A DNA stretch of 64,000 nucleotides from Ascoidea asiatica JCM 7603 (Eukaryota > Fungi > Ascomycota): the NCBI GenBank assembly GCA_001600695.1, contig BCKQ01000001.1:2028615-2092614 (forward strand), given 5' to 3'. The notes under the pieces are model-generated. The model saw nothing but the letters and a program-made list of their open reading frames with translations. It made no database searches and was not told where the DNA came from. The position numbers were made by a program, and so were the translations under genes. Numbering within the stretch: the stretch's first letter is position 1; every line of letters begins with the position of its first letter. Positions 39,370 to 42,189 of this stretch are shown piece after piece.

Positions 39370-39595
39370 GTATTTAAATAATGTAAATATTGTAAATAAT
39401 GTAAATAAAGTGATAATATTAATTGTAATACAATAATTAATACAATATTTTATTTTAAGTAAAGAAAAAAAAAAAAAATTTGAAAAACTATAACTATTAT
39501 AAAAATTAACAAAATTTACAAAATTTACAAAATTAATAGATATATACACTTGATAATTTATTAGAACTAAAAGGTTTTTCTGAAAATAAATAATT

Positions 39596-39669
39596 GACTC
39601 CGTGGCCAAGCTGGCTAAGGCGTGAGACTGTTAATCTCAAGATCGACAGTTCGATCCTGTCCGGGGTCG
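39596..39669 (+). tRNA. tRNA-Asn (GTT)
   Basis: Cloverleaf with GACTCCG/CGGGGTC acceptor stem, TGAGA-CTGTTAA-TCTCA anticodon arm and GTTCGAT T-loop. T-rich terminator downstream. Confidence 0.97.
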
Positions 39670-39774
39670 TTATTATTTATTTTTGTTTATTTTTTTAATA
39701 ATTTAATTTAAATTTGAACTAAATTAATTTTAAAAGATAAATCTTTGAAAGATAAATTTAAAAATTGATATTTA

Positions 39775-40104
39775 TTATAAGAAAGATAAAAGTAAAGAAA
39801 TTGAGAAAAAAGAAAAGGTTGAAGGAAGTAATTTATTTGAACCACTATCGGAAGAAGCAGATGAAGAAGAAGAAGTAACAGATGCAGAAGAAGATGAACT
39901 AATTGCACTAGTTGTCATAGTTGTAGAATCCATACTCATACTCATATCCATGGTAGTAGTAGTACCATCCATTATCATTGTTGTTGATATCATATCCATT
40001 GATGATGAAGATGAACTCATATTCATATCACTCATATCCATTGCATTACAATTAATTAAAATTGAAGAAGATAATAAAGTTAATAATGGTAAAGATAATT
40101 TCAT
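39775..40104 (-). CDS. Small secreted, probably GPI-anchored Met/Ser/Thr-rich protein (Ctr1-ectodomain-like Met motifs)
   Basis: Signal peptide MKLSLPLL...INCNA. 13 Met in residues 22-63, mostly as MxM/MxxM. Ser-rich stalk, small-residue omega region (DSGS) and hydrophobic tail (TFSFFSISLLLSFL). TTCAAAATG context. Confidence 0.8.
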   Translation of the reverse strand: MKLSLPLLTLLSSSILINCNAMDMSDMNMSSSSSSMDMISTTMIMDGTTTTMDMSMSMDSTTMTTSAISSSSSASVTSSSSSASSDSGSNKLLPSTFSFFSISLLLSFL

Positions 40105-40432
40105 TTTGAATAAAAATTTAAAATAATTAATATGTTAAATTTTTATTGTTTTTTAAATATTGAAAATATTGAAAATATTGGAAATATTGGAAAATTGATT
40201 ATATTTAAATGAAAATTAATAAAAGAATTTTAATAAATAATAAATTCATTTTTGGAATAAATTATTATATACAGTATATAAAAAAAAGGTGTCATTAAAT
40301 TAACAAAATATCAGAATATTAATTAACAGTATTAATCTAATATTTTTCATTCATAATTGTAGCAAATTATGTAAAAATCAAGTTTTCAGATATTGTAAAT
40401 CAAATCAAAACAAAATCAACAAAAAAAAAAAA

Positions 40433-40443
40433 TGAGCAAATTT
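40433..40443 (-). promoter_or_regulatory. Mac1-type copper-response element (AAATTTGCTCA)
   Basis: Minus strand reads AAATTTGCTCA, matching WWWTTTGCTCR, about 330 nt upstream of the Met-rich gene ATG. Confidence 0.55.
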
Positions 40444-42189
40444 GAACAGATTTGGAGGTGGATACAGAAACAAACATTTCTTTAACTACAATAAGTGAAG
40501 TTGAAAACTTATTTTATTATTTTTGGTTGTTAAGAAAAGCTTCTAAGGCATCTTATTTTCTTTATTTCTTTAACAAATTGGGGTGGAAGTATTTTCATTC
40601 AGAATGCTTTCAAGATAATTTAAAAGAACTAATCAATATAAACTACCAGTGAATAATATCAATATTTCAATAATATTTCAGCAAAATTTCATTCATCCAT
40701 TTCTGGAAATTTCTAAATCAGAAATGCACCCTCGGATATTGGTAGCTGTCAGATGCATCACCTGACCAAGCTGTTTCCGGTGTCTCACGTGAGAACCATC
40801 TAGGTGGTACCCTTCCGTCGTTAAGTTTCTGTTTGCGAGCGTCCAGTTCTGGAAGAAGTTTTTACTGTTTTGACTCTGAGAGAATGAAGCAAAAAGGTAC
40901 AGAAAACTGATGATTGATTCAATCTTTACACAACTCACTCAAGAAGGTTGTTCCTTGTTTATTGAAGGAGAATTGAGAAAGAAAAGTACACCAGAAGAGA
41001 ATAAGGTGGAAGTTGAATGAAAACGAATCCAAGAAGAGTCGTGAACAGAGTTGAAGAGTTGAAGAGTTGAAGAGTTGGAAATAATACGCTTCAGCCTTTT
41101 AATAAATTATTTCCATTTCCATTTTCCTCTGTTGTTTTGGTGTTTTGCCGTAGGAATGAAAATAAAACGTAATTTCCAGTGAGATCTGAGAAACCACTGT
41201 CATTCTCCCACAGTACCACAGTACCACAGTACCACAGTGCTAGTACTGAAGTATCCAATTATTGTGTTGGTGTACTTTTCTCACTCTTTTCTCACTCTTT
41301 CTCAGGCACAACTTCCTCCACTTTCACTTTACTATTTTTCACTGCATTTCTATTCTATTTACGTAGTTCTAGTTTTAGTTCTATTCTATTCTACTATTCT
41401 ATTATTATTATTATTATTATCGATTTTAACAATACAATACAATACAATACAATACAATACAATATTTATATTTATATTCATAATTATAACTATCAGTTAT
41501 AATTATAACTACAATTATAATCATAATTCTTATCATCCTCATTATCATTATCTCATATCTCATATCTCATATCTCATATCTCATATACTACTAGTTCTTA
41601 TCAGAACTACTCTCAGTTTCAATTCTAAATATAAGTTCATCTTTATAAATAAAATTTTGGTAAAAAGCAAAAAAAAGAAAAAAGGAAAAAAAAACCCAAA
41701 AAAAGGTAAATAAATCAAATTAGAATCAAACAATCATTATCATTATCATATTCATTAGACATAATTGATTAATAAATTTATATTTTATTCAATATTAATA
41801 ACCATTATTCACTACTGTAGTAATTAATTTTTACTCTGATTAATAGCATAGCTCCCTCTGAAATATAAACAAGTTTTAAATTTTATACGTAATAATAATA
41901 ATTCACTTTAAATCTAAGATTATTTAATAATATTTATTTATTCCTAATTAATATAATATATTCAATATAACTATTTCAATCAATCAATCAATCAATCATA
42001 CATTATATATCCATTATATATCTTTTTAAAGATTTAACTATCTTCTTCTTTTTTTTTTTTATCAAATACCTTTTATGTTTCAAAAATATACCTTTTTTCA
42101 AACAATTTAATTAATATTCTTCATTAAATTACCTCTAATAATAAGTAATAATCATATAAATATCATTTTAAAATATTATTTTCCTAATA

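Follow-up and report, generated by a model that had tools for sequence, protein, structure and literature searches.

The locus described here lies in the very AT-rich genome of a budding yeast (20.3 Mb, 23% GC), within a window, i.e., the whole 64-kb stretch of DNA that was analysed, of 23.5% GC. Between the genes for a YchF/Ylf2 GTPase and a Sel1-repeat protein, the minus strand contains an open reading frame (ORF) for a protein of 109 aa, together with the following features of the protein and of its upstream region:

39775..40104, minus strand: the 109-aa ORF, from ATG to TAA, with the stop codon within the coordinates; single copy in the 20.3-Mb genome
40042..40104, minus strand: predicted signal peptide MKLSLPLLTLLSSSILINCNA, residues 1-21 (hydropathy and -3/-1 rule; AlphaFold helix at residues 5-18)
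39916..40041, minus strand: Met-motif region, residues 22-63 (13 Met, 7 MxM and one MxxMxM, in Ser/Thr/Asp context)
39853..39915, minus strand: Ser/Thr-rich stalk, residues 64-84 (from the sequence; pLDDT <50)
39778..39852, minus strand: GPI-attachment-like signal, residues 85-109 (pattern match, hydropathy 1.9; terminal helix at residues 95-108)
40264..40280, minus strand: TATA-like boxes (TATATAC and TATATAAT), 160-176 nt upstream of the ATG, read from the sequence
40359..40366, minus strand: near-match TTTGCTAC at -255, with GCTA in place of the GCTC core; the perfect site lies 74 nt further upstream
40433..40443, minus strand: perfect Mac1-type element AAATTTGCTCA, 329-339 nt upstream of the ATG, in the orientation of the gene

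A tRNA-Asn(GTT) gene (39595-39670, plus strand) converges on the ORF, its end lying 105 nt from the stop codon.

The architecture reported in the initial annotation, namely, 109 aa with a signal peptide, 13 Met among 42 residues, a Ser stalk and a GPI-like C-terminus, was seen again at 39775-40104 on the minus strand, and the signal-peptide and GPI predictions that it had proposed as checks both gave pattern matches by rule (-3/-1 rule, regular expression and hydropathy). The putative signal peptide MKLSLPLLTLLSSSILINCNA, followed directly by MDM, combines a basic n-region (K2) with a hydrophobic core at residues 3-17 (Kyte-Doolittle 1.6-1.7), and the cleavage site predicted by rule has small residues at -3 and -1 (C-N-A at positions -3 to -1). 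Residues 22-63 (MDMSDMNMSSSSSSMDMISTTMIMDGTTTTMDMSMSMDSTTM), with the predicted mature start MDMSDMNM, hold 13 of the 14 Met residues of the protein. By composition count, the protein contains no His, and its mature part no Cys, the single Cys being located within the signal peptide; there are 7 Asp, and Lys2 and Lys91 are the only basic residues. The Met region is no microsatellite, given that Tandem Repeats Finder reports CATACT x2.7 within it and nothing else. Nor does the ORF contain any CTG codon, so that the CTG ambiguity of the clade is irrelevant to its translation. AlphaFold, run on the single sequence, returns only a hydrophobic helix at each terminus, with low confidence in between (mean pLDDT 55), and the acidic Met region, for which no confident fold is predicted, is probably disordered. 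The stalk at residues 64-84 is, by its composition, probably O-mannosylated.

The C-terminus reads SSDSGSN-KLLPST-FSFFSISLLLSFL, with omega-site candidates S85, D86 and S87, the spacer NKLLPST and the hydrophobic tail FSFFSISLLLSFL, and no dibasic residues precede the omega site. The GPI signal was called with a regular expression modelled on the fungal pattern that De Groot is said to have described in 2003, in combination with hydropathy; on this basis, the protein is probably GPI-anchored at the cell surface. The earlier statement that there is no transporter domain held up: no Pfam domain matches the protein at E<=1, the Ctr domain (PF04145) included, and, apart from the signal peptide and a C-terminal tail of 13 residues, it has no hydrophobic segment. 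Members of the Ctr family have three transmembrane helices, with MxxxM in TM2 and GxxxG in TM3. Because it has no transporter domain, the 109-aa protein is not a member of this family; in place of the Ctr transmembrane domain, it has a predicted cleavable signal peptide and a predicted GPI-type tail.

The Met region nevertheless resembles the ectodomain of the yeast's own Ctr1, a protein of 299 aa (L006:1174-2073) that starts with MDMSGMDMGTSSMDMNMDMDTTSSTMDM and in which 16 MxM motifs precede the Ctr domain. In a BLASTP search with compositional adjustment, residues 22-57 of the ORF align with residues 1-38 of Ctr1, with 19 of 38 positions identical (50%) and an E value of 2e-4, which refers to a single pairwise comparison. 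The aligned segment starts at the predicted mature N-terminus (MDMSDMNM, against MDMSGMDM... in Ctr1), and CTR1 opens with the identical 12 nt that encode the first four mature residues, MDMS, of the ORF product. At the DNA level, the best local alignment, between MDMSDMNMSSSS of the ORF and the stretch encoding MDMDMDMSSSS in Ctr1, scores 44, compared with 28.9 +/- 4.3 for codon shuffles, none of which (0/500) reached this value. The 11-mer encoding MDM[S/T] occurs 48 times in the 20-Mb genome against 41 for the control, i.e., at chance level; the only loci with more than one such word are the 109-aa ORF (2) and Ctr1 (3). The description of the protein as Ctr1-like is thus better founded than originally noted, considering the alignment to the N-terminus of the yeast's own Ctr1, the DNA score above codon shuffles and the repeated MDM[S/T] words. 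Among the new findings, this likeness speaks most strongly for the copper reading. It could have originated either by partial duplication of the 5' end of CTR1 or by convergence, a sequence this short and biased being compatible with either.

The copper system encoded elsewhere in the genome provides the context for this resemblance. There are two copper-fist factors, both of which exceed 600 aa through long poly-Asn tracts. The first (L071 1098-2945), in which a copper fist is followed by two CxCxxxxCxCxxCxxH (Cys-His REP) motifs, is, by these sequence features, the Mac1 orthologue; the second (L072 1010-2983) has a fist with an Ace1/Cup2-like Cys-rich continuation. Three Ctr loci were detected, all away from the 109-aa ORF, and two of these form a head-to-head pair on contig 5 (L005/L006, G000:C5:1077480-1080471) encoding proteins of 248 aa and 299 aa. 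The 1.35-kb intergenic region of this pair contains four TTTGCTCG sites (WATTTGCTCGT), against about 0.06 expected, three of them within 110 bp, and these elements sit in a patch of raised GC content. Thus, this species evidently uses the Mac1-type element. The Fre-family reductase genes do not stand out in this respect, with an upstream element in 2 of 13, which is not above chance; the best-scoring member nonetheless parallels the 109-aa ORF in having one TTTGCTCA upstream, at -362 and likewise in gene orientation.

Two further loci came to light in this survey. One encodes a Ytp1-family membrane protein (PF10355, E 4.5e-66; L013:202-1671, minus strand, G000:C1:1453661-1455130) with a signal peptide and a Mets-like motif, SDMDMGMDMSS, ahead of the transmembrane part; copies of TTTGCTCA are found 868 nt upstream of the gene, inside the signal-peptide codons and about 240 nt past the stop codon, and the product may be another copper-related surface protein. 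The other, at G000:C17:84455-84476, holds AATTTGCTCAT twice in direct succession, the sole tandem pair among 78 extended sites, and is a candidate strong Mac1 target.

At the 109-aa ORF itself, there is one perfect element. A perfect site about 330 nt upstream had been listed in the initial annotation; it was found at a distance of 329 nt from the ATG, and the whole 64-kb window has no other match to TTTGC[TG]C[AG]. The near-match at 40359-40366 was also recovered, as TTTGCTAC on the minus strand, and, with its core broken, it is probably non-binding, judging from work on S. cerevisiae Mac1, which bears out the original caveat that there is one perfect site only. In S. cerevisiae, Mac1 targets usually have two or more elements, and the Ctr pair of the present genome has four. 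Across the genome, TTTGCTCR occurs 927 times, compared with 443 occurrences of the reversed control (4.6e-5 per bp), so that hundreds of unrelated promoters carry one; by chance, about 0.027 sites are expected in the approximately 590 bp that separate the ATG from the next feature, i.e., about 3% of promoters would have one. The flanks of the site at the ORF (AA...T) are the same as in two of the four Ctr-pair sites, and the extended form AATTTGCTCRT, which was chosen after the site had been seen, occurs 29 times in the genome, two of these at the Ctr pair. Taken together, the single element is compatible with real Mac1 regulation and is no proof of it.

Other features of the upstream region can be noted in their own right. 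A six-copy repeat of 9 nt at 40155-40209 (AAATATTGA on the plus strand, TCAATATTT in the orientation of the gene) is located 50-105 nt upstream of the ATG and likely belongs to the core promoter or the 5' UTR. Between the promoter and the Sel1-repeat gene, positions 40600-41400 form a single-copy, ORF-less island of 35-44% GC within intergenic DNA of 11-18% GC. The island includes tandem motifs, GTTGAAGA x3 near 41050-41078 and CCACAGTA x4 near 41207-41238; it has no Rfam match, and its predicted fold gives z = -3.1 on the minus strand versus -1.1 on the plus strand (20 shuffles). Being single copy, it was rejected as a solo LTR; an undescribed ncRNA is one possible reading, and a GC-rich regulatory island comparable to that around the CuREs of the Ctr genes is another.

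These observations support the copper reading in part, and we weighed several alternatives. A somewhat unlikely one is that the ORF encodes an ordinary small Ser/Thr-rich GPI mannoprotein, that its Met richness is a by-product of AT-rich low complexity, that the TTTGCTCA site is due to chance, and that copper plays no role. Indeed, a scan of the genome for the coding pattern MxM...MxM...MxM returned 1368 matches, and one for MDM...MDM mostly recovered Asn/Asp-rich nuclear proteins and microsatellites; in this genome, MDMDM and MNMNM blocks occur in non-coding microsatellites as well as in several nuclear proteins rich in Asn/Asp. MDM/MNM alternation being this widespread, the alternation of Met as such is not specific. 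The 927 genomic TTTGCTCR sites, the absence of an orthologue in Ascoidea rubescens (see below) and the ESM Atlas, where the 109-aa protein has no homologue and the nearest clusters are generic small surface proteins (KRE1 and CFEM, with scores <0.9), point in the same direction. Against this explanation, the Met region is not a microsatellite and is embedded in a Ser/Thr context, as in Ctr1, rather than in an Asn context; repeated MDM[S/T] words are confined to the ORF and Ctr1; and the Ctr1-like motif coincides with the sole CuRE in 64 kb.

A second alternative questions the gene itself, which could be a non-functional chance frame or a very young one (proto-gene), perhaps the remnant of a partial duplication of the 5' end of Ctr1. 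The ORF is short and an orphan: no homologue was found among 5.8 billion proteins (E<=10), HMMER detected no relative among 1.8 billion representatives, and look-ups by exact sequence, made for the ORF and for its Sel1 neighbour, returned no record, blank searches being, however, weak evidence for a low-complexity protein of 109 aa. The genes surrounding the ORF are of budding-yeast type. The product of the adjoining YchF/Ylf2 GTPase gene is closest to that of A. rubescens; this nearest match is only 54% identical, and therefore the databases contain no close relative. In A. rubescens, as here, YLF2 and the Sel1-repeat gene are adjacent, with an interval of about 600 bp there versus 2.8 kb here, and the A. 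rubescens interval (L009 11465-12065) contains neither a Met-rich ORF nor a tRNA-Asn gene. Going by this comparison, the 109-aa gene is lineage-specific, or was inserted or lost since the split from the A. rubescens lineage. Several features nonetheless argue against a chance frame. Not one of 2000 shuffles of the local 500 nt yielded an ORF of at least 109 codons. Excluding the ATG codons, the GC content at codon positions 1/2/3 is 0.19/0.61/0.05, the third-position value being at the same low level as in eight neighbouring genes (0.03-0.09), whereas the flanking intergenic DNA has 0.08-0.18 GC at all positions; it is this frame specificity that marks the ORF as coding. In addition, the frame includes a full signal peptide and a full GPI signal, both by prediction, starts in an A-rich context (AAAATG) and is preceded by TATA-like boxes. 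Accordingly, a non-functional or nascent frame appears distinctly unlikely, and the ORF is, on these sequence criteria, very probably a real gene.

The last alternative is a protective surface Met buffer that would act either as a Cu(I)/Ag(I) sponge limiting entry, similar in principle to bacterial SilE/PcoE, or as a sacrificial Met sink for extracellular oxidants. It draws on the same architecture and Met chemistry, on the acidic and probably disordered nature of the region and on the presence of the Ace1/Cup2-like second copper-fist factor, but is very unlikely. The element has the GCTC core of the Mac1 type; an Ace1-type GCTG core is missing from the 356 nt that precede the ATG, for which reason Ace1-type regulation of the ORF was rejected; and the closest sequence likeness is to the ectodomain of an uptake transporter.

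Starting from the observed architecture, Ctr1 likeness, element and Mac1 and Ctr genes, we tentatively propose that the ORF encodes a lineage-specific, Mac1-induced surface helper of Ctr1 in copper capture; that the protein is anchored, binds Cu(I) and passes it to Ctr1, and that copper regulates the ORF, is what we infer beyond these observations. The product would enter the secretory pathway, shed its 21-residue signal peptide, acquire a GPI anchor and heavy O-mannosylation, and end up at the plasma membrane or in the cell wall. There, the O-mannosylated stalk would present an acidic region of about 45 residues in which Met provides the only soft metal ligands and in which the MxM/MxxMxM motifs would reproduce the Mets motifs of the ectodomain of the yeast's own Ctr1. 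Thioether-only MxM/MxxM clusters of Ctr1 peptides bind Cu(I) and Ag(I) selectively, with micromolar affinity and in an oxidation-resistant manner. The Met region could likewise bind a few Cu(I) ions with micromolar affinity, each through about three thioethers, so that 13 Met would accommodate about four Cu(I). Cu(I) made by surface (Fre) reductases would be kept near the membrane, raising the local Cu(I) concentration beside Ctr1, and would be handed to the matching motifs of Ctr1 by ligand exchange. When copper is scarce, Mac1 would act on the lone TTTGCTCA at -330 to raise transcription. A point against the proposal is that the Met motifs could be hidden by dense O-mannosylation. The copper-capture interpretation of the initial annotation has thus gained from the architecture, the Ctr1 likeness, the Mac1 orthologue and the clustered elements at the Ctr genes, and is weakened by the presence of only one site at the ORF.

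Comparison with known systems places this helper protein, if it is one, among several partial analogues. The nearest counterpart is the ectodomain of the yeast's own Ctr1, which shares with the ORF product MxM/MxxMxM motifs in a Ser/Thr/Asp context and, at the level of the gene, TTTGCTCR upstream. S. cerevisiae Fit1-3, which are small Ser/Thr-rich GPI wall mannoproteins induced by the low-iron regulator Aft1, retain siderophores at the wall for transporters; they are similar in size and type, but lack Met motifs and are unrelated in sequence to the ORF product. The bacterial SilE and PcoE proteins are small disordered periplasmic Cu(I)/Ag(I) sponges that use mixed Met/His ligands, are induced by metal excess and are unanchored. 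The protein described here is likewise small, Met-rich and, by prediction, extracytoplasmic, but has Met without His and is eukaryotic. Cbi1 is a folded, LPMO-like copper-binding protein with histidine coordination. In Cryptococcus neoformans, GPI-anchored Cbi1/Bim1 is strongly induced by copper starvation and works with Ctr1 in copper uptake (PMC9258870). By contrast, the ORF product has no His, no confident fold and no Pfam match.

A conceptual precedent comes from an alga. Chlamydomonas CTR3 is a stand-alone secreted Ctr ectodomain that belongs to the CRR1 low-copper regulon and arose from a duplicated CTR N-terminal region, with a soluble P80-derived protein of Dictyostelium as an independent analogue; the ctr3 mutant shows no clear phenotype (bioRxiv 10.1101/2023.10.19.563170). 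CTR3, a soluble periplasmic protein, is composed of Cys-rich CTRA domains that are folded, whereas the mature part of the ORF product is free of Cys, relies on Met only, has no confident fold and is probably GPI-anchored, and the two are not related in sequence. Thus, of the original claim that no described family has this architecture, the novelty of the concept did not survive, given the precedents of Chlamydomonas CTR3 and Cbi1/Bim1; the novelty of the chemistry did, neither of these being a Met-only peptide, and no Met-only GPI copper protein of fungi turned up in our searches of the literature. With slightly more reserve than for a role as a helper of Ctr1, we suggest that the ORF may represent the first stand-alone Mets-motif protein in fungi. 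It would be a disordered Cu(I) relay held by a GPI anchor and based on Met alone, a copy of the Ctr1 ectodomain made by partial duplication or convergence, and, as a member of the Mac1 regulon, would concentrate Cu(I) at the cell surface for Ctr1 or extracellular cuproenzymes.

How surface Cu(I) passes to Ctr1 without re-oxidation or loss is poorly understood, and Cbi1/Bim1 of Cryptococcus is the only known molecular handle on this process. A minimal tethered Met-only peptide in which the capture motifs of the transporter are duplicated would be a very simple model of an extracellular Cu(I) relay that operates by ligand exchange. Should the Met pattern prove to be a low-complexity accident, the case would serve as a warning on reading metal motifs in extremely AT-rich genomes. 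In either event, the combination of a signal peptide, dense MxM motifs and a GPI signal, in a protein without a Ctr domain, provides a search rule for other yeasts. If the copper-relay reading is true, the protein would be a third, chemically distinct solution beside Cbi1/Bim1 and the algal CTR3, and would show how the ectodomain of a transporter can give rise to a surface module of its own.
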